A stretch of DNA of 64,000 nucleotides from Paragordius varius. Taxonomy: Eukaryota; Animalia; Nematomorpha. Below, one piece after another: positions 24,036 to 59,980 of this stretch. The stretch spans positions 12,524,001 through 12,588,000 of the forward strand of contig OZ176051.1 in assembly GCA_964247055.1 (NCBI GenBank), read 5' to 3'. The first letter of the stretch is position 1. Every line of letters starts with the position of its first letter. The position numbers and the translations under genes are program-made. Below the pieces are notes generated by a model. It was not told the origin of the DNA and did not search any database. It saw only the letters and a program-made list of their open reading frames with translations.

Positions 24036-25156
24036 ATGCGGAATGTTAATCGGGGGTTATTGGTTTTTTTCGGGCTTTTGGATATCGCAATTAATACTCT
24101 TTTTTATTGCCACGGAAGTAAAGCTTGCCCCCAAAACTTTTGGAATGTGAAGTATTTTGATATTTATCACGATATTTTTGACACATGGTTGATTAATTTT
24201 TTACGCGCTTGTTTATTATTGGGTTTTGGCTTATATTTATATTGCGGATCACCCACCATAAAATGCTTAAATATTTACAAAAATATTGTTATAATTGTAT
24301 GCCTATTATCCTATACTTACCTGATGATAAAATTGTTGGTCATGTCTGAGAAAATATTGAATTGGAAGAACCGGCCATATTTTTGGTGCCATTTTTCATG
24401 GTCTTTTGCATCCATCGTTATTACTTTTGTCCTGATTAATATCAAAATTAAACAACTTACAAAACAAGTACAGATCCTCAATCACAAACAAAAATTAAGT
24501 TTACGCAAGAAGAAGGATAATCATAAAACTAACGTTGCCGCATCCTCATATGTAACGCCGGCAACATCGGCTCGAAAAGATGTGTTAGTTCGTAAACCCA
24601 GTCCAGAACTCTCATTACTTCCAAACGAACATGTCAATTCACCTTCCAGTTTGCCGGAAGACGCCGCAACACTGAAAGCTAGTCCAGATGCAAATAACCC
24701 AACTAATGATAAGACTCTACCCCAAAAAACTACTACGGAACAGGAAGAGGAAAACGCTGATGAATATATTATTCCACCATCTACAAAACAGCTTGTGACT
24801 CCCATGCTTCGTATCATTAATTATGCCTTACCCGATTACGGGATATATAGTATAGCTTTCCTGTTTCTGTTTATAGCAGCCATTGCTGATATCTTTCAAC
24901 CCTATTACATGGGTAAAGTGATTGATGGCATAGTGATTGGTAAGAGTTATAAACAATTCTCCAATGCCATCCTCATCATGAGTATAATAAGTATCGTTTC
25001 AGCTTTTGCGGCTGGGGTGCGGGGTTGTTATTTTACCGTTTGCATTTCCCGCCTAAATTTACGTGTGAGGAAAACGTTGTTTGCATCTCTCTTGCACCAA
25101 GATATGGCTTTCTTTGATGAAGTCAAAACGGGAGAATTGACATCTAGGTAAGTTTT

Positions 25157-25201
<45 letters not shown>

Positions 25202-28200
25202 CTGTTTTTGGACCTTAAAGTTTTATCACAGTATTATTTTTGTCAAATAAGCCAGAGATTGCATTTTTTAATGTTAGCAGGCCATATTTGAATTTCAGGA
25301 GTAGGGTTGAATAATGTCATAAAATAACTTAAATTACTGATATGCTATTTATACCCTAGGAAATTGATTTCTCTTGCACCACCTACAATATTTTTAAAAA
25401 TGCGCTCTACACTATTAGGTGCCCTAAGTTTGCCCTTAATTCCATTTTTACATGACTAAATAGGAATTAACAATTTTTATCTTTTAAAGAACAAATTAAA
25501 ATAGTTTGTTTCTTTAATATATATATGATTACACCTTGACACACAGGATATCGGCAGATACCTCAACCCTGAGCGACCTGATTGGCGTCAATCTCAACAT
25601 GTTCCTCCGGAGTATAGTTAAGGGTGCTGGCGTTTGCATTTTCATGTTTACCATTAGTTGGCAACTTAGTATGATAACTGTGTTAGCATTGCCCCTGTTT
25701 ACTTACCTCTCCAAGGTCTATGGTAAATTCTATGAACGACTGAGTGAAAAAACGCAACACAGCTTAGCTAAATCGAATGAAACGACGCAAGAAACGCTCT
25801 CAAGCATACGAACCGTCAAAAGTTTTGCCGGAGAAAATAGTGAAATTCTACGGTACTCACGGGATCTCAAGAAAACTTATAGGCTTATGAAACGAGGTGC
25901 TATCCTATACGCTGGGTATATGTGGTCTTCCAAGGTATACTTACTTATTATGTCTGGTAAAAAATAGATGGCTAAAAGGGGGAATGTGTTTCTATTCATA
26001 TTTAAGCCACTAATATTGCTATTTTGGCGAATTTTTAATTAACTAGTTCAATTACTGAAATGATTTAAATAAACCAAACACATTATATTAAATAAACACC
26101 ATAACATTCCACGTTTCAAAGTTAGCTAATACTTTGTTTTGTTTAGTTTAGTTCTGCTGAATAATTCTTTACCCAATAATTTATTAATTAATCAATTAAT
26201 TGATTTCTTATTAAAATGTGTAAATATTTTTTTGACGCCAAATCAATTAATTTTCTTAGATTTTTCTTGGGTTTTACTTTAATTATCCTGGTATTATTTT
26301 TAATTTTTCTATATTTTATATATATTCTTTTACCCTTAAAAAATAACCTTCACATTGTTACCACGTTTTTTTTGAGGTATAACCACCCATGTATACATTT
26401 TTGCTAATATTTATTTATGTATTATTTTTTTTATCGATTTTTTACAAAATTAATATTTTTATATATAAACTAATATAATACTAATTTTTTTGAATGCACT
26501 TTGGTTTACTTAACCTGAATGAATACGTTTGCGCCGAAAAAATAATTTAATTTTGATAAAAAATATATTTTTTACAATAATAAATTAAAACATTAATTTT
26601 ATTTAATATGGCAAATTTTCCCTGAAAAATAGAATTATACCATTTGCACTTCAAGAGTGTCCTTGAACACTTCAAGTTGGTCCTTGAACAATTTTAGTTG
26701 GTCGTTGAACATTTCATAGTCCTTGAACACTTCAAGTTGGTCCTTAAAATTTATAAATTTTGATTTAGCCATAATTTTTGCAATTATAAACCTAATTTTC
26801 TTTATTTATTATATATTTAAAAATAAAATTTTTATTTTAAAACCACTTTTTTGTTTCAAACTATTTTTTTGTATTGAACAAAATTATTGACTTTTAAATG
26901 TTTTCAATGAAAAATTTTAATTACTAACCCAGAAAACTTATATATTTTGTCATTTCGTGTTGAAATCTTATAAATATCCAAAATTATTTTAAGAAATTAA
27001 TAAAGATATACAGTTTCTCAAAGATTAAAAGTTGATATCGATTTAAAATTTATTTCAAATAATGGAAAATAGGTTAAAAACGATAAAATAGATGAATAAT
27101 ACCTGATTTGATTGATAAATGTTAAAAACAAAACAAAAAAGTCAAAGGACCAACTTGAATTGTTCAACGCCCAACTTGAAGTGTTCAAGGACTAATTTGA
27201 ATTGTTCGAGGACCAACTTGAAATGTTCAAGGACCAACTTGAAGTCTTCAAGGACACTTTTGAAGTGTAAATGGTATATCCAGGGGGTGTGCTTTTTAAC
27301 CCTTACAGTTTTTTAAATATCTATTTTTTTGAATAGTATTAAAATAAAAGTTAATAACTTTGACTATTAACGTTTTTTTAAACTAGAATCGTTAAAATTA
27401 AATAAATTCCTTATCATAAATAAGTTAATTAATAGGTCATCATTGGATAAAATATAAAATATACTTTATATCCTCTACTATTATAAAAAATATTTTAACG
27501 TTTTTTATACGAATAATAATAAGATTATTAATTCCTTTTTTGTTTAAACTAGTTTTTGTAACACATAACTGCGGAAAAATTTGACAATCTCGTATAAACA
27601 CAATTATATAGGTGATAATATGCCATTTACTCTTAAACTATTCAAATTTACCCTTACAATTTAAATTCACCCTTGAACAATTCAAATTCACCCTTTAACA
27701 ATTCAAATTTACCCTTGAACAATTCAAATTTACCCTTAAACAATTCAAATTCACCCTAAAAATAAATTATGTGTTTTCGGTCTAATACCACCTATGATTA
27801 ATATGTTATATAATCTTATGGTATAGTTTATAATTTTTTCAGTGTTATATTATTTTTAAATGTAATTTCCCTTTTTTCAAATTATAAAAAAAATATAGGT
27901 ATGTTTTAATCTCAAAAAAGACATGATATATTTTAGGGTGTGCATTTGAATTGTATTGTTTAAAAAGGTAAATTTGAATTGTTCGAGGTTTGAACTGTAA
28001 ATTTGAATTGTTCGAGGGTGAATTTGAATTGTAATTGGTATATTATTATAAGAAATTAGTTTAGGTCAAATATTGTTAGAATCTATTATATGGTTGTAAT
28101 TTCAATAATATGCTAATTAAAAAGCGGTTAACATAAAACGTTTTACATGCTTGGTTAATATTATTGTTATAAATATATAGCTTATATTTTACAACTAATG

Positions 28201-31200
28201 TAGGCATATGAATTAGCTATCCTTATTCTCATACTGTATTACGGCGGTCATTTAGTCCTGAACAAAAGATTGTCTGGGGGCGCATTTGTTTCATTTCTAC
28301 TGTATCAATTACAGTTGGGGGAAGCGATAGCCAGTATTGGGAATGTTTTTACCGGTCTTATGCAGGCTATTGGTTCATCTAAAAAAGTTTTTTTTTTATT
28401 TTTTTTTTTTATGGTTTTAAAAGTTGTGTTCCGCTTTAAGAAGTCTATTTATTGGAATAACAGTTGTAAAATCCGTAATATAATAATAATATCGAAAATT
28501 AAATAGAAAATTAATTGAAAGAAGATAATTATTAACAGAAATTATAAACGATATGTGAAACTCTTTCGTATCAATAGTAATCGTAGACTAGTTTCGTGCG
28601 ACGAAAGGGTTTCACATATCGTTTATAATTTCTATTAATAATTATTTCTTCTTTCAATTAATTTTTTATTTAATTTTCGATTATCATTATTAAATTACGG
28701 ATTTTACAACTGTTATTACAAAACATAATTAATCCGTCATTTACCATTACTATTTATTGGAATCTTTGCATTAAAAAATCAAATCGTAAAAATATCTAAG
28801 GCCCATGTTTTTTTGTGCTAATGTGGCATTTCCGGTGGATTTTGAAATATGAAATAAAAATGTAATTATTTCTTTATAATGTATTTCATTATTTGGGTTA
28901 AAACGTAAATATTTTTGCTTTGCTAATATGCAATGCAGCTATTGTTTTGGGGTTGTTAATTAAAGAAATTAAAAATATATTATTTTTCATTAATGCCAAA
29001 AATTATTACAATTTGTTTGCAATTAAATGATTTTTCATCATTAGGTTTTTGAACTGATTTATCGAATACCAAATTTTAATATGGAGGCAGGACGCTACAT
29101 TCCCAAACAATTTGATGGGAAAATTACATTTTCTCACGTTTATTTTAGTTATCCAACACGGAAAAACGTTTTAACACTAAAGGTATATATCCCTTTAAAT
29201 TCTGAAATAATTCAATCACAAAAAACAGTAAAAACTGAAATTATACGGACAAAACGTAAAAATATAAAGACAAATATTTTTTTTTTGTAAAAGAGACAAC
29301 ACCATACTTTTTAAAACCTTAATTATTGCCATATAAAATATTAAATTACAATCGTAAACTACATAATTGATTGTGCTACCAATTTCATTTCTATATTATA
29401 ATTTGTAGTTTAAAACAGTGAGATATATTCAAAAAAATCAAGATTAAAAAAATATGGTTCTCTTTAACAAAAAAATATTTGTCGTTATCTTTTTACGTTT
29501 TGTCCGTTAAATTTCAATTTTTACTGTAATTAACCAATTAAAGACACACTTCTTTATTGTATGAAATTTGTATAATTACATTTTTAACCTTGTATTTATA
29601 TATATGTTTACCATTTCTAACATTCAAAAGAATTGGTATTTTAAGTTGTTTTTTATCACACTTGGTTATAATATTTTAATTACTTTATATATGTTATACA
29701 TATAAGTCGGGGGTAAACATATAATTTTAAATTTTGAGACACACAAAAAAGGTAAATCTTATATTATGATTATAAGAAGAAACACCCTATATATATGTAG
29801 ATTCTATTAAATAAAAATTAACCTCTAATGCTATTAAACCCATTATTATATAATTTTGCTTCAGACATTTAATTACCCTTTAGTTTTGGCATTTGAATAC
29901 TGTTAAATTAACCTTTTTTTGTTTGTATTAAGTATCTTTCGAATATGGGGTAGTAAATATTTTTATATACCATTTACAATTCAAATTCACCCTCGAACAT
30001 TTGAAATTCACCCTAAAAATAAATTATGTGTTTTTGGGCTAATATAACTCATCTTTATAATATGAAATATATTTTTACGACATAGTTTTTTTTAGGATTA
30101 TATTAATTTTAAACAGAATTTTATATTTTCCAAATATTAATAAATAAAGCCAATTTTTAATTGTAGAAAAACACATAATTTATTTTAGGGTGAATTGAAT
30201 AGTTCAAGGGTGAATTTGAATTGTTCAAGGGTGAATTTGATTTGTTCAAGAGTGATTTGAATTGTTCAAGGGTAAATTTGGTAAATGCAAGGGTGAATTA
30301 GAATTGTTCCAGGGTGAATTTGATTCAAGGGTAAATTTTAATTGTTCAAGGATGAATTTGAATTGTTTCAGGACGAATTTGAATTGTTCAAGGATGAATT
30401 TGAACTGTAAATGGTATATATATAAATTGCTAATTTTTTTGTTGTATGAAAAAAATAATTTATTTATAGGATGTTTCATTTGAAGTGAAACCGGGCGAAA
30501 TCGTAGCCATCGTAGGCCCCAGCGGTAGTGGAAAAAGTTCGTGCTTAGCCCTACTTCAAAATTTTTATCCCCCGGATCGAGGGACAGTCTGTATAGATGA
30601 TATCCCAGTCAGTGAATATGATTATACGTATTTGCATCAAAAGATGGCGCTTGTTTCCCAGGAACCTACGCTATTTGCTCGAACTATTCGAGTATTTACT
30701 TATTATACTACGCTTTTGAGTATTTCTGAATTATATAGGTTTTAGAGAGAGATAGATTTACAAATTATATATATTTATATGGGTCTTTTTTTTGAACGAC
30801 GACCCATTTTTATCTTTTTTTGGGGGGAAAATAACTTTCATGTAAGGATGGTAAGTAAAACATACCATTTTTTAAAGACCGTTTTTCTACACCTTTTCTT
30901 AAAAAACTTTTTTAACTTTTTTAGTTTTTTCTAAATCTTAATTAAATTGTTAAACAAATCAATATTGTTATTTATGATGGAATTATCAAAGATTATTTAT
31001 ATATTAGAGAAAAGTACCATAAATTTGTGTCTTGTATCTTATTTTTGCAGTTATTTATAATTAATATTCAATTGAGTGATTAGGATAATTTTAATTATAT
31101 AAAAACACTTGAACCGAATCATATACTTTGCAAAAATTACTATTGAACCCAAAACATTTTATCCTAGGTTAGTTTTTCACAAAAAATATGTAGAATTGGA

Positions 31201-34200
31201 TTTAATTGTTTTTCTGTTCTTTTTGTGTCCCTACCTTGACATATGAACGCCTTATAAATTGGCCCATTTCCGATATATCAATAAAAGAAAAAGTTTTTTT
31301 CATAATTATTTTTTATACAAAAATTTTAAAATTCATTTTTAATCCATCAATGCTGGCTAGTATTGTGAGGTAACTTTAAAATACATTTTTTGTGTAAGTT
31401 TTTTTTATGTACAAAAACGATTATATATATATATATATATATATATGGCATTTTAGGATAATATTTCGTACCCATTCATGCGTAAGAAATTTAACAAAAT
31501 TCTGGGTATTATTGGAGCGGCAAGCGCAGCCCTAAATCAGAAAATATCTGACATCAGCACCATGATACGAACTAAAGCTACGCGTTTAAGTGTAGTTGCC
31601 AGTAATATAGGTAACATACTATTTTAATTTTTTTTGGAATATGATTTTATATTTTTGCCTCTAAAGATTGGGAAAATAGGTTTATTCTCGATACGCAAAT
31701 ATCTGAGGGCCTAAAATACACTATATTGTTTATTTAATTTTTTAAATGGTTTATAGTTTAGTCCTAAAATATGATTTCAAAGAATATGGATTCATAAATA
31801 TTGTTTTTAATACTCTTTTGATTTCGGCTCTCTACACATTAACTAACTTATCTTGTTCGATTTTTATAGTTTTAACGAAAATAAATAAATAAATTTAATT
31901 TATTATTTGTGATATGAACACAAATAAAATATTAGTTGCGTGTAGACTGATAAAATGAGGTTAATATTATGAAAACGAATATATTATTTAATAAATTTGA
32001 ATTATCCTAAATTTAAAACCAATTATTCAGGAATTTCATTTTATTTTTATCCATTAATAAAAAGATTTATCTTTCATTCATCTGAATTCTATATATATAT
32101 AGTTTAATTTTCATTTTAAATTAATAAATTTTACCAGAATTCAAATTAAAAAGTTTTGTATGATTGAAAAATTGCTGGCTTAATGTACTATGTTTTATAC
32201 AATGTATATAAAGTTGATAAAAGTGGTGGTTTTGGTATGGCGTCCCCTACTCCATTAACACAAACCCATTCACCTACGACCTCCGAAGAAAATGTCACCC
32301 ACGTCCTAGAAACTCATGATTTATTGTTGGAAAATGAGGAGGAATCAACTAACCCAAGCGGCCGTAAAAAGGATTTGGGAGATGAAAGGTTTGATTGAGT
32401 TGTTTTGCTTTAACTTATCTTATAAACAAACTTTATTACGAACGACTTTTAATAAAAATCTACTAAACTATGGTTTTATATCTTTTTTAAACTTCCATAC
32501 ATTTCATTAGTATCTTTTTATAAATGAGATTTTTTAGTTATTTATTTTAAAAATAAATCAATATCTCTCATAATAGTACATTATTGTGTTTTTTGTTATC
32601 AAGTGTAACCACCTCATATACCATTTGCATTTCAAGAGTGTCTTTGAAACTTTCAAGTTGGTCCTTGAATAATTCAAGTTGTTCCTTGAACATTTCAAGT
32701 TGGTCCTTGAACACTTCAAGTTGGTCCTTGGACTTTTTTGTTTTGTTTTTAACTTTCATCAATCAAATCGTAAATAATTCATCTATTTTTTTGTTTTTAC
32801 CCTATTTTCTATTTTTAACATAATTTTTAAATCGATATCAACTTTTAATCTTTGACAAACCGTATATCTTCATTATTTCTTAAAATTTTGGATATTTATA
32901 AGATTTTATTACGAAATGAAAAAATATATAAATTTTCTGGGTTATTAATCAAAATTTTTCATTAAAAACATTTAAAAGTCAATAATTTTGTTCAATTGAA
33001 AAAAAATAGTTTGAAACAAAAAAAGTGGTTTTCAACAAAAAAATTTATTTTTAAATGAATAAATATATAAAAAATAAAGAAAATTAGGTTAAAAAATAAT
33101 AAAATAAAAAAATGCATCCAAAAATTTTGGTTAATCAAAATTTAAAATTTTTAAAGATCAATTTGAAGTGTTCAAGGACCAAGTTGAAGTGTTCAAGGAC
33201 CAATTTGAAGTGTTCAAGGATACTCTTGAAGTGCAAATGGTATATTATGATAAAAAATAGTTATAAAATTTTGTTCAATATATGGTTTGTTTAGAGATGA
33301 AGATTATTTGTTGGATAGTGAGGACATTAAACTCCTGACCATGGATAAAGGGGCCGAAGCCAGACACAATGAAGCCAAGCAACTTGTCAAGGCTAGGAAA
33401 AAAGCGAGGAAAAGGAAATCATTTTCAAGCCAACGAACGCATTACAATGGTAAAAAGGCTAAATTTAGAGGCGATAAAATAAAGTTTTTCTTCTCATACA
33501 TTGAGAAAGTGAATGGTTATGAACACAAACAAATTTTTGTCCAAATATATACCATATACAGTTCAAATTCACCCTTCAATTCTAATTCACCGGACAAGAT
33601 TTTAACACAAATAATAATATTTTGAACAATTCAAATCCACCCTTAAAAAAATAAATTATCTTTTTTTTCAGATTAAAAATTGCTTATATTTTTTTAAAAT
33701 AAAATTTTGTATTAAAATTTATTTAATATTGAAAAAATAATAAACCCTGACTTAAAAATATATATCATATTAATGATGGGTGGTTATATTAGCCCAAAAA
33801 CACATAATTTATTTTAGGGTGAATTTAAATTGTTTAAGGATTAATTTGAATTGTTTAAGGGTGAATTTGAATTATAAATTTTTTTTAGATGTTGAAGCAA
33901 AAAATGGTACACCTCTTTACATAACTAATGCACAAAAAAAGGTTAATGGAACTTTGCCTCCCAATCTAACAACTCATGATGATAATCGTTATAAATCTGA
34001 ATCCGATTTATCTAATTTCCCAGCCCAAAACGCTAAACATAATGACAGTTATAATTGGATGAAAGATCTAACTCCTGAGTACTGACCTTTTTTTTATTTT
34101 ATCGTTTTCACAAAAAAATGTTTGGACAGTTACTAGTTTTCTAATAAGTTGCCTTTAAATTTTATTCTGCCAAGTGTGAAACACGAAAAACTAAGCTTTT

Positions 34201-37200
34201 TTATCTATGTATATGGGTACAATGTTATTAAAAAATCATTTATCCGAAAAATCATGTTTATTTAGCTTTAAGTTTTCACATCATATCAATTGAAATTTTT
34301 TAAGGGGTTATTAACTCTTTTTTTCACATGTCCCAAATAGGCAAAAAAAGAAGATTGAACAAATTTTGACGGACCCACAAACGACTTATGTGAATTCACC
34401 GCTTGAACCTATAAGTGTAGAAACTATGAATCGAAAAGAAAATTTATTATCTAAACGCCTTGGTGGCATATTTTCCGATCCGAGGTATTATTGTAGCATA
34501 TCATTTATTTATCAATTCTAGTTAACCGATGGTATTAACCGATTAATTTTTGCACTTATATCAACATTCTAACTAAATATTTCATTTTCATGATTTTTTT
34601 TTAAAATCCTGCGAAAATACCCTTAAAACTAAAGTTAACTGACTGGACATTAAAAATCTTAATTTTTCATTTATATTATGACCAATTCTTTTGATTATTG
34701 CTTTGCAAACAAAATTAACACACTGACTGCATGGAAAAATTGCAATTTAAACTGCAAATTTTTTTCCAAAGTTAAAAATTACTTTACCATTCATTATACA
34801 CTTCAAGTTTAATTAAATATGTTTGTATTATGGTTGAAAAAATATAGCAAAATTAACTAATTTACTTTTTCAATCCCACTTATATAAGAATTCGGATTAT
34901 ATTTAAAACTATAGGGTTTTTAAGGCATAAATTAATTAACCATTTTTTTTAAAAAAATTAATTATGATGATGTGAATAATTAGCCTTGTATTATGAATAT
35001 ATGAGAATATAATAAAATCTATTCTACATTGTCCGTAGTATTTGCATATAATTTACATATGCAATGTTTACCGGATTTGGTCATATTTGTGTTAGCTTGG
35101 ATAATTTTAGGAGCCTTTTTTCTCTAATATTAAAAGCCTCATCTTTGTTATCTATTAAACTAAAAAAAGTCGCGCCTAATGGCATACAAATAAAGGCACT
35201 AAATTTGAACATTATATATATTTGCAGATCAACTTAGCTGTAAACTACAAGTCTACTATTATTGGAATAAAAATATGATATCACCTATATGTGTTTAAAC
35301 ATGAACACTTTATTTTACATTACTTTTAACGACTTAGAAAGTATACTTTCATATCTATCAAATTTTATAATAATAATAAGGTTTTTGTGATTACAATAAA
35401 AAATATATATTCTTGTTACCTACCACAATATTAAGGTATCACACATCAATCCAACACTTGATTGATGCCGCAGCGCGAAGTCCCATAACTCGCGCCCAAT
35501 ATTACGCAAAATGTTTATGTTGCCGATCACCTGATGATCCCGTTCATCAAAGGCTTTCATCAACGGCTTCTACATACAGCAATCACAATCATGTTGTTAA
35601 TACTTCTCTCCATAATCCGCAAATTATAGTTGATGATCCAAATGTTAATAAGAAGAAAAACTCATTGAAAAGGCATTCCCTTTCCAAATCTAAAGATGAA
35701 AATCTCCACGACGAAAAGGCGGAAAGGAACGAGGATCGAAAAATTGTGGAAGCGGCTAAACTTGCGAATGCTCATCAATTTATTTTGGGTCAACCCGGGG
35801 GATATGGCATCAATATTGGGGAACGTGGTTCCATGCTCTCGGGTAAGCGATTTTATTTTATTTTTACCATCTGTAAGCAGGCGTGATGGTAAAGCCTTCA
35901 CATGTCCTTGGATACAAATTTAAGTCTCCTTACCTTTTACTAAAAAAAGGAAAAAAGAGACTCTAAATAAACTGTATATTTATTTATTTATTTTATAAGC
36001 AAATTTGGTAGTATGGCATGTGGAAGGAAATCGTCGTAGGTAGATTTGGTTCGGTCGGTTCGGTTTCCACTTATATTTTTTGGTGAGGAAATAAACGACG
36101 GTTTTCCATTCAATGTTTCATCTGTTATATTGGTGCGTTGGTCATATGTTAGCTTTTGTTATCGCTCCCATGTGGCAATTATTTTACTACAAACAAAATA
36201 AATTGTCAAAATGTATAAAGATTTTATTAATATAACAAAAATTATTATTGTGTAATACTCTATAAATTTCGAAAAAAATTAATATTAAAAATAAGTGAAA
36301 GCAGTGTTACATTTGTCAATGGTAATTCCACACTAGTTTTATGGCTTGTTAGCATTGCTCACTGCTATAAAACTGTTGAACTTGGCGTTTTCACACATTA
36401 TTTAACCAAAGTTTGAAATGTTCCTTTCCTCTTTAATAGTTTGAAATTTAGGGTAACCTAGGTATCAAATTTTCAACCTGACTTAATATAACATTACCGA
36501 CAACATTTATACCATATATAATACAAAGTTGGGGCATATACGGAATTTATAGCCTTGTATATAAGTTAACACGAAATTAATCACAAAAGCTTTTATATAT
36601 ATCTAGTTTATTTACATTAAATCAATCACTATATTGAACGAAACGTATATTATGATTCAGTATATTCATATTATATAATTGATTGATTAGGGGGTCAAAG
36701 ACAACGCATAGCTCTAGCCCGGGCTCTGGTTCGTGATCCATCTATTTTATTGTTGGATGAAGCCACATCAGCTTTAGATGCTGAAAGTGAATATTTGGTT
36801 CAAGAAGCAATCACCAAAAATTTGAAGGGAAAAACGGTCCTTATCATAGCACACCGGCTTAGTACGGTGCAATCTGTAAGTTTAAGCATGTAAACTTTGA
36901 GTCGGGTGATAAAAAATTTTTTTGACTTGACTTGCAAGTTTTTCAAGTCATGGCTTGCTTTCATGTGATAAAAAAAATTTAACATTACACGACTTAAGTC
37001 AAGCAAGAAAACTTGATAAGGAGGTGATAAAAAATCATATGTTCAAGTAAAACTTGGAAACTATTTATATACCAAATTTAGGTTTTATATGTAATTCACC
37101 TTTATTAATGCTATAAATTGTTAATTTGATAAATTTTGGCTAATTAATCTATTCATTGGGTGGATACAAAAAAGGATAAATTTATAGAAAAACTCTGCTA

Positions 37201-40200
37201 TTATTAAATAACATGGCACATAAAAATATGCTAAATATATCAATTCCGTTACCGCAAAAAAATGGATTCTCGAAAATTTCTTAAAATTAATAATTAAATA
37301 TTAATCTTGTAAAATTTCAATTCTTCGTTTATTAAAAGCAAAACTTCACTTTATCCAATGTAAAGAATTTATTTAATTATAAATTTATTTCGAATGTAAT
37401 GTTTATAATCAATTAAAAATAATTATGTTATATTGTATAAACATCTTCCCATTATATTTGCAACTGGACTCCAAACAAAATAAGTAGTGTGGTAAAATAA
37501 TGGAAAGTGTTTTAAAAGCGAATGGTTTCATCAATCTAAAAATTATTACCAGGCTCACAATTTAGAAAACTCTGGGTGGGGTGATAAAAAAGTCGCACTT
37601 GACTTGTAAGCCAAGCGTGGCAAGTTGAGCAAGATTACTTAAGCCAGCAAGTGTACACTTGAAGATTGGTGATAAAAAAAACACTTAAGTCAAGTCTTTT
37701 GCTTATGAATGTAACAGTTTTTTGCCACCCAATTCGAATTTTATGGAAACTTTTTTGATCATTTTCAGCTAAAATTTATGAAATAAGGCACAAAAAGATA
37801 AACAATAAATACAATATGCATTACTTGAAGTTTTTCAAACTCACTGGCACGTATCTTATTTTATATATAGAGCTTTTTAAATTGTGAGCCTGGTAATAAT
37901 TTTTAGATTGATGAAACCATTCGCCCTTAAAACACTTTTCATTATTTTAACACACTACTTATTTTGTTTGGACTCTAGTTGCAAATATAATGGGAAGATG
38001 TTTATACAATATAACATAATTATTTTTAATTGATTATAAACATTACTTTCGAAATAAATTTATGATGAAATAAATTCTTTACATTGGTTAATATTGAAGT
38101 TTTGCTTATAAACAAGATTTGAAATTTTACAAGATTAATATTTAATTATTAATTTTAAGAAATTTTTCAGAATTTTTTGCGGTCACGGATTTGATATATT
38201 TAGCATATTTTTATATGCCATGTTATTAAATATTAGCAATTTTTCTATAAATTTATCCTCTTTTATATCCACCCAATGAATAGATTAATTAGCCAAAGTT
38301 TATAAAATTAACAACTTATAGCATTAACATAGGTTTGATTTACATATAAAACCTAAATTTTATACATAAATAGTTTCCAAAATAATTTTAACCATATTTT
38401 TAAATCTGTCAAGTGTGCCCTACAACACACTTGCAAAATCTTTAAGTTTTCTTGATCATGTGATTTTTTATCACCTCCTTATCAAGTTTTCTTGCTTGAC
38501 TTAAGTCGTGTAATGTTAAATTTTTTTTATCACATGAAAGCAAGCCATGACTTGAAAAACTTGCAAGTCAAGTCAAAAAATTTTTTTTATCACCCGACCC
38601 TCTATAATATTATATAAGATACGTGCCAGTGAGTTTGAAAAACTTCAATAAATGCTTATTGTATTTATTGTTTATCTTTTTGTGCCTTATTTCATAAATT
38701 TTAGCTGAAAATGATAAAAAAAATTTCCATAAAATTCGAATTGGGTGGCAAAAAACTGTTACATTCTTAAGCAAAAGACTTGACTTAAGTGTTTTTTTTA
38801 TCACCGATCTTCAAGTGTACACTTGCTGGCTTAAGTAAACTTGCTCAACTTGCCACGCTTGGCTTACAAGTCAAGTGCGACTTTTTTATCACCCCACCCT
38901 ATATGTAGAATGTTGCAAATGCAATTAACTGATTGAAAACTTTAATATTATCACATTAGTTAAATTCAATCTCTATTATATATATATATATATATTATGT
39001 ACATACATACCTGTTGAAATTCAATATAATAAAAAACAAAATTAACTAACTAATATTGCTTTTCGTAGGGTTGACAATTTTAAAAAATAACTACTTTGCA
39101 AATTTTTTACAGAAAGTTTAAGTTTACCACTAATACATATATCACATACTAACGCTATTCTTCACCTTTAAATGGTCGAATTCCTAAAAAGGACCACATT
39201 CACTTTCATGAGTATAATCAATACCGACGTTTGGGTATTAGCACAACGGTTTTTTTTCAGGAAAATTTTATTCGTATTATTGGTTTGGCCTAGGGGAATA
39301 TAAAAATTACAATATTTTCTATTATTTTTATCAAGGCAATAAACCAAACTATGCGATTATAACTTTATGATGAATCCTATTTTAAAAACCCTAAAATTCC
39401 ATGATGATTAGCATGAACATTAGTTTATAAGCAGAGGGGGGGGGGGAGGGGCTCTTTATTATACAAGCGGCCTATTTTGAGTCTGGGTTTATGTTATATT
39501 AGGCAAATCGTATTCTTGTCATGTCAAACGGGGAACTTGTGGAACAGGGGACACATGCAGAGTTATTAGCCTTGGGTGGAGTTTATACTCATTTAGTTCA
39601 ACGCCAAATGCAAGGTTATACTACAAACACCCCCAACACTCAAGAACACGAAGACGATATTACTGAACAACACAAAAGTGGTATGAGAAAACTTGCTTTT
39701 TGTAAAATTTTTGACTTACTAATGAATTAATTAATTCTTAGTACACTGTGATGAAAATTTGGGTGCTGAAATTATTAAATGATAAAGTTAAAAGTCCTCA
39801 ACTTAAGTTTTAGTACTTAGTTTATAACTTAAACTATTTAATTGTTAAAAGATAGTCTCCTGTTTTTAATTTTCAATTATAGGATAATTTTGAATTAGTT
39901 TAATCTATAAATTGTATAAAATGATTCAATTGTGTTAAATACTATACATTGACTAAGTGTGTTTTAATGCAGTTTGAAAATTTAAAAAAAACATTATTTG
40001 AAAATTCCTATATACATTATATATATATATATATATATTAACCAACATTTGGAATATACTCAAAATTTTAATTTTGTTAAGAAAAATAATAAGATTATGG
40101 ACCTTCTTTATTTATTAATATTATTATATCGAAAATTAATGCTATTATCTGGCATTTATTTTAAAAAAAACGATATAATCTATTATAACGAATTTGATAT

Positions 40201-47442: not shown

Positions 47443-50400
47443 CTATGGATTCATTGCCTCGGTTTCGTCCGTTTCTAATTCGCGCGGATTCGTAAAACGA
47501 ATTCTATCACCAGATGATGAACCCTTCCATATGGTAGTAAATGTTTTAGGCCGGTTTAAATGTAACGTTTCCCGGAACCAATTCCATAACTGAAGTCTTT
47601 TGGATGTTCCTAACCGTGATAAAATAGCCACTAGTAGGAGACAGAGAGTAATACTAACCCCGAGTATTGCAATTTTGACATAATGAAGGCTCCTACCTTG
47701 CTTAGATTGAGGGCTAATCCAAGACTTTTCGATTCTATTGCTTTCATTTTTCGATTCCCCAGATAATATGAGTGAGTCTTTATTTCCACAAAATGGTTTA
47801 AGAGCCCTCAGTAGGAAATGACTAATTATTTGAATGGACGAAATATTATATTTGGGGTTTGTGCAAGCCCCATCTACCGGTGGAACTTTATCATTGGAGG
47901 TTTGGGCTATAGGGGATTCATAAAACCACCATTTATTGAGATTATACACATCACAATCACAAATAATCGGATTATCTAAATCATAATTTATAGTATTTAT
48001 TAGAAAACCTTTCACACAAGACTAAATTTTTTTATATATCTAAATTATTTAACATTTTATATGTTTTCATGTAAAAATCGCAACAAAGTGTCGTTTAGTT
48101 ATGAGACATTGCTCCTTTTAATTCTCTAATCATTGAGACAATTATTATAAATCGTGCCAAAATTGACAAAAAAATGATAATAATGAATTAGATTGGTGTA
48201 TATTTATATCTCAACTTCTACCTATTAAATTGTATATTTGCAAATGTTTTGTACCATGTTGCATACCAAATTATACTTAATTTTGAATAACATCAATCTG
48301 GCAGTTATTTTAATGCTGCTCCTTTCAGAATTTTTTAGGATGTTATTTTAAAATTTTTTTGGCACCATTGTACCAGAATCTAAAGTTGTTGCTTTATAAG
48401 TTTAATTCATAAATATATATCATTGGCTAAAAAATTCAAATAATTGGGCCAGGATTATTCAACGCCCGGTCCTCCGAATTATTTCTGAGTCCCACAAGAT
48501 TGTGTTCTTATTTAATCTTAGAACCTATTCCATATTTTTTTAAAATGCCCGACGATTGCGTCAAAAATGCGACCCGCAAAGTCATTTGTGTTGATTACCC
48601 CTGATCTAAGCCTTTATAAATGAATATTAAAGGAATCTATAAGATTACCGAGAAAGGTAAAAAAATATGGAATAGTGTGTGTGCATATAACACTTTACAA
48701 GACAGTACTGGGCAGGAAATGTACAACATATTCTTGTCAAAAAATTTAATCATAATTTTTTAAAAATAATCTTATCGGGTTATGGTTAAAAGTTTCAAAT
48801 TAAAATCGACATATTTGATGAAAGCCTTATAATAACATGAGTTGAATGAATATATTAAATAAATAATTGTTTAAATTTTAACCATAGTCGAAATAAAACA
48901 GTAACATTTTTCTCCTACATTAACGATATACATATTATAAAAATAATCCTATAATTATATTTATTTATCATTATAAGATTAATAAAAATTGCTTGGTCGT
49001 GAGGTCCGAACAAACGAAATTGTACAATTATGCGGTAAAAGATTGTATTTTGTAATTAGACATTATATAAAGATATAGAGTGTACCCATAACATTCCGTT
49101 TAAAAATAATTTAAACCTTATTATAAAAGATAATGTATGATCTAGATATAAAAATACTCTGATCGCAATTTTTGGTTGATTTTTTTATACCCAATATCAG
49201 AAATCAAAAAAGTGGCGCTAAAATATTTAATAACAATTTTTCAGTTAAAATAGCCCAAATATCCTGAGGAATTATCTTTTCCAGACAATATACGCAATAT
49301 TTAAATAAATTTAAATAATATATATATATATATATACCTTATAGGAATATGTATCAGGATTACGATTTGATTATGGTTTTGGCCCTTATGAGTGTGATAT
49401 ATGAAAGTTATTAACACTTTTGTGGTAAGTGGTGCACATCATAAAATGGTAAAATTATCGCACATTTTTTGAATATTTTTTTAGATGATAGTAAGCTTAA
49501 TCCAAAAATATTATCAGAATATATCATAATTTACATATAAAAAGCAAAACAATATTTTTAAAAAATTTAAAATTTTTAGATGTGCCACAAATTTTTGTTC
49601 GGGTTTAAAATGGGTTAATTTTTTTTAAATAACCATAAAATGCCGAGATTTGGCGATAAAAATTTTAAATATATCCTAAATTCTGATATTAAATAAAAAC
49701 ATTTTTTAAAAAATGCCTACTTTTTTAAAAATTTTATTACAAAATTTTGTTAAAGCGTACTTCTTACTTTTTTCATGAAGGAAACGGTATAAAAACGCTT
49801 TGAGTTATTATAAATATATAATTTAATGTTGATGAGATCTCTTCATTTTAAGTTAAAGGTTCGTATGCAAAATTTTGTTAAATCTTTGTTATAAAACACA
49901 ATTTATATTTAACAAATTTAAGACGTTCGGTCACATCTTTGATTAATTTGACTTAAATATTGTTTTGCTTTTTATATTTAGTTTATGATTTTAGTAATAT
50001 TTTTCGGAATGAAGCATTTAGTTTTTACAAAAAAAAATTTATTTAAGTGCGCAAATTTTACCATTTCCTGATACGGAACACTTGCCATAAAGTGTAATCA
50101 ACTTTCTTATATAACCAAAAACAAAAACATTAAGATAATTCTGATACATTTTTTATTAAAATATATATATATATATCATCAGGAGTTTATACACCCCGAT
50201 TTTAGACGCAGTGTGTATATTAAGGTTTGTAAAAGTATGTCCAACTATTTTGCAAATAACCCAATATATATAAAGCTTAGATCATTTAATTATGTTACAG
50301 ACGTGCTTTCCTTTTGCGAAAAGATTTTGACTAATAGAAATTATCACAGTTTTTTTTTATTAAACAAAAATATTTATATGCCCGCCGGTCCCAAACGGTT

Positions 50401-52474
50401 TTAAAAAAGCCAATGGTGTTAAATCAATTAATATAGCATTTATATAAATTTTCAGAACCGGTATGAGTAAATATTCATATAAATGATAGATACCTGATAA
50501 AGTAACCCTTATGTTTGAATTTATCATTAGAAGTTCTGATAAACCCTGGATTCCAGAAATTTGATTAGAAGCCAAATTGACTATTGTTAAATTTGTAAAA
50601 TCCAATAGGGAAGCAAAAGGAAAACTCTTCAATTGATTTTGGTAGACTCCTAAATGTGAAAGGGATTTTCGCATGTTTATATTTGGATTTAATTTAAAAT
50701 CTTTGAGTTTATTTGACCCGATATTCAATGCCACTAAGTTAGGGTTATTGGCAAACGTATTTTGTGGGAATATTTCTATTTTATTATTCCGCAAATTTAG
50801 ATGTGTTAGGTTATGGAGTTTTGATATCAATTGTGTTGGTACAACCTAATATGAGATTAAGCCGTTAAAATGTCTGTAAACTATTTAAAATCCAAAGTGC
50901 CAATCGTTATATTCTATACAAGTTGACATGAAAAACTAAATTGTATAAAAAAATAACGGTAATTTTAAATTCTATGTGATAAAACCGCTGTAACTTTTAA
51001 TCTATTTTTTATATAAGCCTCACTAAAATTACTCAATAACTAAATAATTAATTCTATTATACGGTGCGCACCCAAAATACATATTATCAATCATATATAT
51101 CATTCGACAACTTAAACAGAATGGTGGATATCGATCGAAACGATGAATGCAATTAAAATACTAAAAAAGTAATTTTAATCTATCAGCCGAAATAAATCAA
51201 ATACAGCCCTAAATAAATATTATTGGGGAATATGTGTAATAATAATAATTTTAATTATTATCGATATTTCAAGAAAAATATATTTTTTAAAATTGAATAA
51301 CATAATGATATAGAAATATACCCTTAGTAAAAAGGTTAATTAAATGTGTCAAAACAATATTTTTTCACCATTCAGTAATGAATTAATTAAAAATGCTAAC
51401 AAGTTTATCTTTTTCTCCCGATCTGGTTATAACCTGCATAATAACTTTCCAGCATATTTAATTTTAAATTGAAAAGAGTAAGAGCAAAAAATAAATCACG
51501 GATGGATTTAGCGCCAAGAAGTCATATATAAGAAATTGTTTTGTCCGATAATTGTTTTAAGTAAAAATAAAGTGATAAATTGCAAACATAATACACAGTG
51601 TATATATCCGGAAATATCAGTATTATTATATGGCTTTTGGTTTTAGCCCGAGTGAATAAGAAAGTTATTATAACTTTTGTAGTGACAAATGGCAAAATTC
51701 AGCACATTTTTTAAAATATTGTTTTTTGGTGAAACGAGGCTTCATTCCAAAAAATATCACTAAAATATATCAAATTGTACATAAAAAAATATTTTAATAT
51801 TTAGATGCGGGCTCAGAACGTTCCAAATTTCTAGAAATGCATTAATTCTTTTAAAATATGCGCAAAAATGCCAAGATTCAAAAAATATTTTAAATTAACG
51901 CTAAATTTTGATATCAAATAAAAATTATAAAAAAATTATTTTTCGGCAAAATTTTAGTAAGCATACTTCATACTATTGTGAGGCATAATGACGGTTTAAG
52001 ACCGGTTTTAAACAGGGGCATGTGGCCCTCCAAAAAATTTTTCCAGCTGCGAGAAATCTTAAATACAAAATTTTACGTTTAAATAAATTTGATTTTCTTA
52101 AAGTTTTCCGATTAAGTTTTTCCAAATTTTGGCAATGAACTAAAAATTGTTATAATAATCAATTGTATTTACATTATGTTTATAATCTAATAAAATATTT
52201 GCTATTGCCCATATATTTCGTGAATGCCACCCGTCAGATTTTTCGATCCAAAAAATGCGGCCCACTTAGCCATTTGTGTAGAACACCCCTGGTGTTGGTG
52301 TAAAATGTCAAAAAACACTTTATATGATCTAATAATTCTGGACATTTCCATCGCTTCCGATTTTTTAAAAGGTTCGTTTGCTTTCAAATTTTGGTATATT
52401 TTTGTAAAAAAAACACAATATATAGAAAAAATTTCAGACAAACGAATAATCGATATTGTCATATAAATAAATAA

Positions 52475-52520
<46 letters not shown>

Positions 52521-55076
52521 CCAGCATCATCAAATTATATTGAAAAAGTGTTTTTACAATATCTTAAACGTTTTTATACCGTTTTCATCATGCTCTAAAA
52601 TAGTATGAAGTATGCTTCACCAAATTTTTGCTGATCTTTGAAGTATGCATTTTTTTATAAATATTATAGTGATATCTTAGCATATATTTAAAAAAAATGG
52701 CGCGATCTCGGCATTTCCTGTATAAAAGAACTAGCCCATTTTAAAAAAGCGAAAAATTTGGGTCTTTCGGGCCCCATATTAAAAAATTAAAATATTCCAA
52801 TAATATTTTTTTGCTTTTTTATGTAATTTATCATATGTTTTAGTGATTTTGGAATGAAGCATATAGCTTTCACCAACAAAATTTGCGCATATTTTGCCGT
52901 TTTCTGATATGGAGCAGTTACTAGAAAAGTGATTTTAACTTTCTTGATCACCCTTAAAGGTTAACAAAAGCACCATGATAATTCTGATACATTTTCCTAT
53001 CAAAATATATATATATCACATCAGGATATTTTTTCATGACCTCCAGATTTGTACACTCTGAATATTCGTATTTAAGTTAAATAATATCGATTCAGTTATT
53101 AATAAATACCAACAAAGTTTCCTTTGAAGGCACAAATTTTGTATCACTCTGGATAACGTTAATGGTTTTAAACTTGATCTTTCATCAATCAAATTTGATG
53201 AAAAAAATAGCTCGGTTAGAAATATTTGAGAATTAACAACTTTAAGTTGTAATCCAAAATTAGTGCAGATATAAAACATTTAATAATTTTTTTTCTTTAA
53301 GAACTTCGAAAATAAAAAACAAAAATGTTTGAAAAAATATAATTGGCTAATGTAACTATATCTGCGCCACATTTTTCGAAGATATAAATTAACCTAATTT
53401 TTGCAAATCAAAAAATAAAGCACTTTGCGCCAAAAGGGGCCTAAAAAGAATATTTGAAATGCTGATGACATCTTAAACATACTACTTAAACAGGATAAAC
53501 AATAATATTTATGTGTTTATTATGTGAAAAGATTTCTCGCGCACGAAATCGACATTTGTGTTACCGCATATTTCTAATTAAAAATTCTTTCGTCCTTATT
53601 AAGTAATGAAAATTGTCCGTTTTGTAATCTAGTAAACTAGGAAGTCTTTTTTTTAAAAAATCTGATGGGATAGAAATGTTCAAGCATTATCAAAATGAAA
53701 AAAGTATTTTCATAAAAATAAGTCTTTATATGAATCTATTTTTCTAAAAGCAGAAAAATTCCTAATAAAGTAAGATTATCAAAACGGCATTCATAAAGCG
53801 TAATCCCATCATCGGTTTATTTATGGTTATTTGTGATCGGATTCTAAACTAAAAGTGCCTGTAATGCAATAAAACTATTAAAAATTTTAGTTGAATTTAC
53901 TTTCAAATTATTTTGCGCTAAATGAAGGTGTGCAAGGGATGTGCGTCGGTCATTATTCCCTAATAGCTTGATTGTACCATCTAATATATCCTGTGGGACA
54001 CCGCTTTCCAACATATTAGAATCTAACGCTAAACGTTCCAAATTAAAACAGGAACGAAGCACATTAGGATGCAAGTCCTCTGGTCTCAAATAATTGCCAG
54101 ATAAATCTAAAAATTTTAATTTAGTTTCCCCACCGTTAGTAATTGAACAAAAGGAAGGCAAAACTTTGAGTTGGTTATCATAAAGGTATAATTCTTTAAG
54201 ATTGGTTGTCTTGCGAAACGCAGTTGTTGGAATTCGTTCAATTTGAGTATTTGTTAAATGCAATGATTCCAAATTATTGGCATGGGCGAAGGTATCTACG
54301 TCAAGTATTTTAATTGCATTTGAAGAATATATAGCGTGTCGCAAATAAGAAATTTCTAATCCCTTTGTGTAAACATTTGGTAGCTTACTAATCAGGGAGA
54401 ATTCCGTTAGATTTAATTTATGGCTGGGAAAAGAAATTTTTTCCAAATTTCGCATATCCAAAGCCAAACTAGTCAATTTTGGGGCATTTACAAAGTGTGC
54501 CATATCTAGCTCACTGATCGTATGAAATCCGAGATCAAGTTGTTCCAGTTTTATGAGTGGCTTTAAGGCCTCAAGTAAACTTGCAATTTGGGGCGTATGC
54601 CAGACAGGGGAATATGAATGGTCAATCACGGATAAATTTTTTAGTGTAGTCCCCAAGGATTCGAACGCATCTAGAGAAACTTTGCCAACCTTCGAATAAA
54701 TGAGGAGAAATTGTGTAATATTTAGTTCAAATGGCTCAATATCTGGTGGTATAATGTAATTGAGTGTGTCGAGGCGACTATCATCTAAGCGGAATCTGAT
54801 ATCAAAGTTATAGGCATTAATGTTAGAAACATTCTTCTTTCGCAGAGTTACAAAAGAGCGCCAAATTTCATAAATTTCATCCATATTTTTGAGGTGTATG
54901 CATCGAATTTCATATACTATAGGGGTTCGTATATTCAATATTTTATTAGATGTGTCAATAACGTGACAACTGCAATCACTAATGGACAATGTTGGACAAT
55001 GAGGAAAAATTTGTCCTCTTACAAGATGATCAGGGAGAAATAGAATAATAGTAAAATATAACCCTGACCTTAACAT
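47443..55076 (-). CDS. Type I transmembrane leucine-rich-repeat protein, 686 aa, 3 exons: 55076-53901, 50845-50494, 47975-47443
   Basis: Signal-peptide-like MLRSGLYFTIILFLPDHLVRG and a Cys N-cap CPTLSISDCSC..IRC. Many LxxLxLxxNxL repeats continue across junction 1 (HLAQNNLK|VVPTQLISKLHNLTHLNLRNNKI), and the LRRCT crosses junction 2 (VTLS-D-NPIICDC). A TM helix IAILGVSITLCLLLVAIL precedes a short tail without a TIR domain. The exons sum to 2061 nt. Confidence 0.85.
52013..52291. mobile_element. Charlie-type hAT MITE remnant; related copy at about 57920-58738
   Basis: CAGGGG start and GCGGCCC...ACACCCCTG end. About 280 bp of similarity is shared with 58480-58738. No intact TSD. Confidence 0.55.
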
Positions 55077-55730
55077 TACGTAAAACAATCAATTTAACAT
55101 TCAAAGAAAAAGAAAAATTTAAACAAATGCTTCTTTTTTACCCATCTTGTGCTATCCGTAAATTAAATTAACTATAAATTTTTATTGCTGATAACAAAAG
55201 TATGTATACGTTAAGTTCTTAAAAAACACCAGATGGTTAATGAAAAATGTATATACATGGGAAAGAGAATACGGAGCTGGCTGAGTATTGCTGTATCATT
55301 TATATGTAAAAAAAAAGTAAGAACAATCACGGATGTTTATTGATCAAAGAACCGATTAACAATGCTAAAAGAGTATCGATCTCTATAAAATTGATTAACC
55401 GAATATAAAATATTTACGATTTTTAAATTTACATTATAATACAGTATATATTATATCGGCAAAATTAATATTACAATATACTTCATGTAAAAGACTCACA
55501 GACATTTAAGAAAGATGCTTTAGTATTACTAGTACCATAAAAGCAAAATACATAATAGTTTTTAAACAAAATATTTACTAAAAATATATTAATCATAATA
55601 TTTATCCATTGTGTACCGAAATTTTAATGGACCCGCTCAAATAAGATATATATAAAAGTAACAAGATTATTTTATATATGCTATTTGACATCAAAATAAA
55701 TTATTTTTTCAAAAATGAATACTTTGATTT

Positions 55731-59161: not shown

Positions 59162-59980
59162 ATGAGCCAAGCGTTGGACATTTCAAAACTGATTTTCCTG
59201 GTAGGTCTTGAAAATCCCAGAGTAGAACGCGAAATTCAATCCAAATATCCAGATGGCAAATAGGACGGGGGTCCGGTAACCCTTCAAGCGATTGTAGACA
59301 TCGCTTATTCCTATGAATTAGAAGATAAAAAGGTTCACAACATCAGAGATAATAATGATATGAACAATAATAATACCAGTGAACTTCCTTCAAGTATCCA
59401 ACCAGTTGTTAATGATAATAATACAATCAATCAAATAACCCGAAAGCTATGTAGTAATTGTGGGTATCGACATGGTTCCGCCACCTGTCCGGCAAAAGGA
59501 AAACGGTGTTTCAATTGCGACAAATGGAATCATTTCAGCACAGTATGCAAGGCAACGTTCCGACGGCCGTCAATCCGCACCATGACTAGCCCGAACAACA
59601 CCCCCCGGATTCAGGTATTAATAAATAATATACCAACAACGTTTATCTACGATACGGGCGCCGAGGTATCCGTTATTGGCAAGCGCACTTGGGTAAATAT
59701 TGGTCGACCTCGTTTGCTCCCAGCTCCAAATTTGCGAACCTACAATGATGGCCCGATAGAAGTACTCGGAAAATCAATGATTTCAGTGGTTTTGAACGAA
59801 GAGGAGAAGTGCCTGCCCTGCGTGGTGACGCAAACTAACCCGCCAGCCGTGTTCGGGATGAATTGGATGCGGGCGTTTCGGTTAGAATTCCCAAAAAATG
59901 TTTTTTCAGTTTTACATACGCAAGCACCTAATAATAAAATGTTATTGATTATTTTGACAAATTGTTTTCAGACGAGTTAG
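59162..59980 (+). pseudogene. Truncated gag plus aspartic protease
   Basis: ATG at 59162 and an in-frame TAG at 59261-59263. Only the C-terminal capsid remnant (LVGLENPRVEREI..VTLQAIVDIAYSYE) is present, followed by two Cys-His knuckles (CSNCGYRH..C; CFNCDKWNHFSTVC) and the protease FIYDTGAEVSVI. Confidence 0.85.

Follow-up and report, generated by a model that had tools for sequence, protein, structure and literature searches.

How might the nucleotide-binding domain (NBD) of an ATP-binding cassette (ABC) exporter accommodate several hundred extra residues in one of its short loops? This question is raised by a TAPL-like gene of the nematomorph Paragordius varius, located on the plus strand at 24036-39730 of a 64,000-nucleotide stretch of genomic DNA (hereafter the window; positions 12524001-12588000 of contig OZ176051.1). 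The assembly (GCA_964247055.1) consists of 110.5 Mb in 44 contigs, and the GC content of the window is mostly 23-30%. A preliminary description of the window, made without database searches, had proposed an insertion of about 370 residues, spread over six exons, within the ATPase domain of this gene. Our analysis confirmed the exon chain for these extra residues in the NBD of the TAPL-like gene. Their inclusion in the mature mRNA, their disorder and any function are what we infer. The reading that we favor, with a probability of about 0.65, is a translated insert of roughly 360 residues, probably disordered, in the loop between helices H3 and H4 of a TAPL orthologue.

The gene was predicted to contain 13 exons. 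Those outside the proposed insert are listed below, with the core transmembrane domain abbreviated as core TMD.

24036-25147, plus strand: exon 1, containing the start codon and coding for the four helices of TMD0, about 87 additional polar linker residues and the first part of the core TMD; donor TAG/gtaagt.
25547-25934, plus strand: exon 2, core TMD; the best PDB match is ABCB9, with 128 bits.
28204-28386, plus strand: exon 3, end of the TMD; ABC_membrane profile positions 237-271.
29045-29182, plus strand: exon 4, the first part of the NBD (A-loop region), from reading frame and splice sites.
30470-30691, plus strand: exon 5, Walker A and Q-loop, ending in phase 0; aligns to ABCB9 521-592.
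36691-36875, plus strand: exon 12, completing LSGGQ and carrying Walker B, D-loop and H-loop; aligns to ABCB9 641-701.
39503-39730, plus strand: exon 13, the last part of the NBD followed by the C-terminal tail and the stop codon, from reading frame and splice sites.

These sequences identify the gene as an orthologue of ABCB9/TAPL whose catalytic motifs are intact. Exon 1 codes for 371 residues counted from the first Met, and two blocks of it align to human ABCB9/TAPL (7v5c). A TMD0 is present, with residues 12-135 aligning to ABCB9 13-135 (38.9 bits, independent E = 5e-9), and residues 256-371 of the core TMD align to ABCB9 169-284 (98.5 bits). Among the solved ABC exporters, ABCB9 was the closest to the core TMD, with 128 bits for exon 2 compared with about 80 bits for TAP1 and ABCB1, and TMD0 and core fit ABCB9 better than TAP1, TAP2 or ABCB10. 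Pfam identified ABC_membrane in exons 1-3 and ABC_tran in exons 5 and 12 (E = 1.4e-17 for exon 5). The single C-terminal NBD has all of its motifs intact, with Walker A and the Q-loop in exon 5, LSGGQ across the junction of exons 11 and 12, and Walker B, D-loop and H-loop in exon 12. Both the ABCB9/TAPL-like identity and the integrity of the catalytic motifs on the two sides of the insert, as given in the preliminary description, are supported by these results. A paralogue search of the animal's own genome with exon 2 matched nothing but the TAPL gene itself, and the gene showed no match in Rfam or tRNA scans.

The exon chain through the insert was rebuilt from every GT and AG in the open stretches together with their phases, the borders of the conserved exons being fixed from the sequence. 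A single phase-consistent GT/AG chain was found to join exon 5 (phase 0) to exon 12, and it runs through all six GC-rich stretches, namely exons 6 to 11.

31457-31610, plus strand: exon 6, the conserved DNISY (31457-31471) followed by 46 inserted residues, basic and hydrophobic; donor TAG/gtaaca, phase 1.
32214-32388, plus strand: exon 7, acidic and rich in Ser, Thr and Pro, with one acidic dileucine motif.
33295-33449, plus strand: exon 8, two acidic dileucine motifs and a basic cluster.
33889-34078, plus strand: exon 9, polar, rich in Asn and Thr.
34341-34484, plus strand: exon 10, polar, 144 nt; the only insert exon that can be skipped alone in frame.
35436-35842, plus strand: exon 11, with 101 inserted residues, among them the Cys cluster CLCC, followed by the conserved helix and the X-loop as far as LSG.

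A total of 369 residues is encoded by this chain between DNISY and the Lys (35740) that precedes IVEAAK, corresponding to about 1110 nt, and exons 6 and 11 are single open frames that run into conserved NBD sequence. The six-exon insert of about 370 residues was thus reproduced by an independently built chain, with GT/AG borders and agreeing phases, and the start of IVEAAK was corrected from 35742 to 35743.

The best explanation of the six stretches is that they are real coding exons of a single-copy TAPL orthologue, as predicted from their base composition, openness and residue make-up. In 90-nt windows, the GC content is 0.33-0.47 within the proposed exons compared with 0.10-0.28 in the flanking introns, with sharp steps at the splice sites. 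The only other GC rises in the insert stretch were the inverted ends of a 620-bp repeat in intron 7. For all six pieces to be open in the frame that the chain needs, the joint probability is about 1.6e-10 in simulated first-order Markov sequences with the composition of each piece; the corresponding value for openness in any frame is about 1e-7. The pooled residue make-up of the pieces (FYMINK 0.29, GARP 0.20) is close to that of the conserved exons (0.33 and 0.20), while 75 chance intronic open reading frames (ORFs) gave values of 0.48 and 0.09. Each piece lies at the extreme tail of these chance ORFs, with between 0 and 4 of the 75 being as extreme. This exon-like make-up argues against a freshly exonised AT-rich intron. 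In addition, each of the six pieces is single copy in the assembly, and the repeats found in the stretch sit in introns. The CAGCTG motif, considered as an exon marker, was found five times in the window (2.2 expected) and not once in the exons of the TAPL gene.

The place of the insert was determined with ABCB9 (7v5c_A) as the anchor. Exon 5 corresponds to residues 521-592, the Lys before IVEAAK to residue 607 and exon 12 to residues 641-701, which leaves 8 residues at the insert place and not the 10-12 that had been given for TAP-family NBDs. The predicted protein resembles human ABCB9/TAPL in being a half-transporter with TMD0, a six-helix core, a C-terminal NBD and all ATPase motifs. It differs in having 369 residues after DNISY where human ABCB9 has a short loop of 8 in a compact helical subdomain, in about 87 extra residues in the linker between TMD0 and the core, and in its total length of about 1226 compared with 766 residues. 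The spacing between the end of the Q-loop exon and the following helix is 375 residues here; across 121 ABCB-type proteins of the library, with 219 NBDs in all, its mode was 14 and its largest genuine value 41, three larger values having been discarded as mispairings or broken models. Among these 219 NBDs the H3-H4 loop accepts smaller additions of up to +27 residues. As predicted from the exon chain, the size of the insert is far outside the range of other ABCB NBDs.

We take the Tyr of DNISY, following standard ABC alignments, to correspond to F508 of CFTR and Y490 of P-glycoprotein, and this equivalence places the insert in the H3-H4 loop. The preliminary description had assigned it to the structurally diverse region, which in CFTR comprises residues 526-547; the insertion point directly follows the F508-equivalent Tyr and is in the loop that holds F508 in CFTR, the H3/H4 loop (PMC8946492). 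The approximately 360 extra residues would therefore lie in the short loop joining the first two helices of the NBD helical subdomain, with the two ends of the insert at the start and the end of the canonical 8-residue loop. The insert may be tolerated because its ends coincide with the start and end of this short surface loop. The fold and the catalytic motifs could then stay intact, with the insert bulging into the cytosol.

Judging from its composition, the insert most likely forms a polar loop that is flexible and for the most part disordered. The pieces are polar, with mean hydropathy between -0.7 and -1.4, except for the extension in exon 6, which is basic and hydrophobic. The insert had been described as mostly polar and of low complexity. 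The first part held, whereas the residue entropy of 3.7-3.9 bits per piece is in the normal range. Motif expectations were obtained by shuffling within the pieces. Three acidic dileucine motifs of the form [DE]xxxL[LI] were found compared with 0.49 expected (P = 0.012), one in exon 7 and two in exon 8, and there are eight Ser/Thr-Pro sites compared with 3.5 expected (P = 0.008). Basophilic kinase sites were not significantly enriched (3 compared with 1.26 expected, P = 0.13), and no excess of CK2 sites or YxxPhi motifs was found in the insert on shuffling. The basic cluster, the Cys cluster and the many Ser/Thr-Pro sites of the preliminary description were all recovered, the first in exon 8, the second as CLCC in exon 11 and the third as the enrichment given above. 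Candidate short linear motifs of the insert, for sorting or for regulation, are the three acidic dileucine motifs, the polybasic patch, the Cys cluster and the Ser/Thr-Pro sites.

Relatives of the insert were sought in several libraries. In a HMMER scan of 1.84 billion representative proteins, exon 11 matched only in its last ~35 residues, which belong to the NBD. The large-library search covered exon 11 only, so that its result, no relative, applies to 101 of the 369 insert residues; the library holds no proteins or transcripts of this species (no self match). None of the 121 library matches of exon 11 was ABCB9-like, and they were unusable as orthologues. Two metagenome scans, one with the exon 11 insert and one with exon 2, returned no relatives. 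Pfam gave no significant family in any insert piece, and the ESM Atlas gave no look-alike for the exon 11 part of the insert.

Several points weigh against a translated insert in the H3-H4 loop. The exon chain is a prediction from genomic DNA, and no orthologue from a related species was found in the library or the metagenome scans. The acceptor of exon 7 (ataaag/T) is weak, and a G at position +1 follows two of the five insert acceptors compared with all seven confirmed acceptors of the TAPL gene. Codon-usage log-odds did not pick the proposed frame for exon 9 or for the exon 11 insert; the score, trained on the conserved exons of the gene (745 codons) or on all long ORFs in 264 kb, was too weak and was not used as evidence. 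Single-sequence AlphaFold2 of exon 11 alone gave a mean pLDDT of 49.6, and the known NBD helix in it was also low (54-59), so that this model is little guide to disorder in the insert. Finally, the insertion point is structurally delicate, since the aromatic residue beside it docks the NBD onto the TMD.

To these points we add the features that would permit alternative splicing, which is the main rival, although we consider it unlikely. Here the exons would be real, but they would serve as cassette or extension exons in some transcripts, and the working transporter would mostly have a short linker. On paper, 38 direct joins between exon 6 and exon 11 keep the frame, and the most canonical-looking one, from 31481 to 35696, leaves 18 residues between DNISY and KIVEAAK. 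It would use the following two sites.

31481-31483, plus strand: internal donor-like site TGC/gtaaga; the exon would end at 31481 in phase 1, 25 nt into exon 6.
35694-35696, plus strand: internal acceptor-like site ...ccaaatctaaag/A; the exon would start at 35696.

The donor at 31481 shares GTAAG with three confirmed donors of the TAPL gene, and the acceptor at 35696 is preceded by a pyrimidine-rich tract. The phase-1 donors of exon 6 (31481, 31505 and 31610) all fit the same acceptors, and exon 11 has several phase-1 acceptors. Since exon 10 alone, exons 7 and 8 together and exons 8 and 9 together are multiples of 3, partial skipping would also keep the frame. Skipping of exons 6 to 10 as a block, which the preliminary description had named as a refuting result, is not viable, because exon 6 carries DNISY and the total length of the five exons, 818 nt, is not divisible by 3. 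However, exon 11 is open for 101 codons before the conserved helix and has an exon-like make-up, which implies selection on a translated sequence, and chance could account for the internal sites in such AT-rich DNA.

A second explanation concerns the purpose of the insert, as an old, selected cytosolic domain for trafficking or regulation, similar to the R region of CFTR and supplementing lysosomal targeting by TMD0. We regard this as doubtful. TAPL is a lysosomal polypeptide transporter, and the human protein needs a targeting signal, which resides in TMD0 (PMC6199259). TMD0 is retained here, and a new targeting module is therefore not required. Consistent with such a module are the clustering of the three acidic dileucine motifs in exons 7 and 8, the eight Ser/Thr-Pro sites, the polybasic run, CLCC, and the preservation of the reading frame and of a protein-like composition. 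On the other hand, short motifs are weak evidence, the basophilic kinase sites are not significantly enriched, the searches of the exon 11 part in 1.84 billion proteins and the ESM Atlas and of all pieces in Pfam were empty, and other polar inserts exist in the TAPL protein and in another ABC gene. For the trafficking or regulatory module of the preliminary description, the hints are the excess of acidic dileucine motifs and of Ser/Thr-Pro sites; the basophilic sites showed no significant enrichment, and the R region of CFTR is located between domains. From these motifs, a dedicated trafficking or regulatory role of the insert is only hinted at.

The other polar inserts were as follows. In exon 1, the linker between TMD0 and the core (24441-24800) has about 120 residues compared with 33 in ABCB9, the additional ~87 residues being polar, and these are certainly coding because they are inside a single uninterrupted exon. 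When the genome was searched with exon 12, the only other strong match was an ABCC-type gene on contig 1 at about 5.417 Mb. This gene encodes a full transporter whose NBD1 holds extra polar residues (L024:1302-1676 and L024:2077-2412). They lie after the Walker A helix and before the Q-loop strand, at a place where rat ABCC2 (8rq3) runs on contiguously at residue 691, and the H3-H4 loops of this gene are canonical in both NBD1 and NBD2. The exon 1 linker and the ABCC NBD1 insert suggest a general tolerance for polar inserts in this genome, and with such inserts in the same protein and in the ABCC gene no special purpose is needed for the TAPL insert. We consider a tendency throughout the proteome no less likely than a module built for a purpose. 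The TAPL insert would then be one case of a genome that tolerates polar insertions in loops of conserved proteins.

A more specific proposal, which we hold to be rather improbable, is that the insert is a lineage-specific, selected tether in the NBD of a lysosomal peptide transporter, adaptor-binding and regulated by phosphorylation. Its dileucine, polybasic and Cys motifs would direct or regulate endolysosomal trafficking, and its site by the F508-equivalent residue would modulate the coupling between NBD and TMD. If true, it would regulate an ABC exporter in a way that has not been described in the ABCB family.

It is very improbable that a nested gene on the same strand supplies exons 7 to 10 while the TAPL mRNA is spliced directly from exon 6 to exon 11. 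Exons 7 to 10 show no ABC similarity and no known family, and a direct join leaving 18 to 166 residues is possible; however, the chain of these exons is in phase with both flanking TAPL exons and runs without an in-frame stop to the end of the NBD, and the extensions in exons 6 and 11 are exon-like too. Several open stretches of 40-66 codons do arise by chance in 25%-GC DNA within a single 3.8-kb intron such as this would be, but that all six are such chance ORFs is scarcely credible in view of the joint openness (P of about 1e-7 or less), the exon-like GC content with sharp borders, a make-up unlike that of chance ORFs, the uniqueness of the pieces amid repeats and splice sites that are phase-consistent throughout.

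The translated polar insert that we favor can be compared with several known systems. Among the TAPL homologues, HAF-4 and HAF-9 of C. elegans are found on intestinal granules (PMC4729119). Like the regulatory segments of CFTR, the insert would be a polar and probably flexible addition to an ABC ATPase scaffold, with phosphorylatable Ser and Thr. In CFTR, the R region is found between NBD1 and the second TMD; the insert interrupts the NBD itself, after the Q-loop exon and before the pre-signature helix. CFTR also has a regulatory insertion between the first strands of NBD1. Neither of these segments is in the H3-H4 loop, and the insert shares no sequence similarity with them. Basophilic kinase sites, by which the CFTR R region is marked, show no significant enrichment in it.

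In SMC/Rad50-type and ABCF-type proteins, the ATPase half with Walker A and the Q-loop is separated by large elements from the half with the signature motif and Walker B, and catalysis is kept. Those inserts are folded (coiled coils and helical arms) and conserved, and their hosts are soluble ABC ATPases and not ABCB-type exporters. The insert here is between the same two ATPase halves and differs in having an ABCB-type exporter as its host. In Plasmodium falciparum, low-complexity regions are inserted within coding sequences (PMC11260460). The two organisms are alike in a very AT-rich genome with non-homologous polar segments in conserved proteins; unlike the P. falciparum inserts, the present one is neither homopolymeric nor of low complexity, extends over six exons and has an animal host. 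Its entropy and its FYMINK and GARP values, the latter two as in the conserved exons, set it apart from an AT-rich low-complexity insert.

The preliminary description took the five new introns of the insert as a sign that it is old and kept by selection, a reading that drew no support from the searches for relatives given above. The introns of the insert contain repeats, and interspersed repeat makes up much of two of them.

32616-33245, no strand: interspersed repeat in intron 7, about 620 bp long, whose inverted ends measure about 118 nt.
33543-33873, no strand: second repeated element, in intron 8.

For the 620-bp repeat, dozens of copies were listed genome-wide at about 87-91% identity (at least 176 matches). 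It is built of short tandem units with the translation NLNCSR/LEVFKDQ, and similar tandem-unit arrays were present in other introns of the TAPL gene (27119-27313, 30203-30480 and 33820-33880). The repeat looks like a foldback or miniature inverted-repeat transposable element (MITE)-type element that inflates introns. A further interspersed repeat of about 110 nt (35877-35996) directly follows the exon 11 donor; at least 39 other copies were scored at 82-89% identity, out of 304 first-look candidates. Intron 11 also holds GC-rich islands at about 36025-36115 and 36295-36385, with no Rfam or tRNA match.

Other features were observed around the gene. A repulsive-guidance-molecule (RGM) gene lies on the minus strand about 13-18 kb upstream of the window (L011:1840-3033 and L011:6303-7244). 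It has about 168 residues between its RGM_N and RGM_C matches in one open frame, and these may be another polar insert. Leucine-rich-repeat ORFs are on the minus strand at 47446-55088, of which 53847-55088 and 50363-50845 match LRR_8/LRR_4, and the long open frames of a long terminal repeat (LTR) retrotransposon are on the plus strand at 59264-62598 and encode aspartyl protease, reverse transcriptase, RNase H and integrase. A non-LTR retrotransposon with an intact ORF of 1032 residues (L007:1880-4975, plus strand) lies about 55-58 kb upstream of the window; the ORF contains an endonuclease, a reverse transcriptase and a weak PHD-finger match.

If the insert of the TAPL gene is translated, it would be about nine times as long as the longest genuine spacing at this loop in the 219 ABCB-type NBDs. 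Deletion of F508 in CFTR wrecks folding. Translation of the insert would show that the delicate loop after the F508-equivalent residue can accept hundreds of residues, and the protein would be a natural test case for the folding and coupling of an ABC exporter with a large tether at its NBD-TMD interface. The finding adds to the signs of an AT-rich animal genome that loads conserved proteins with polar inserts, with practical value that is limited pending RNA.

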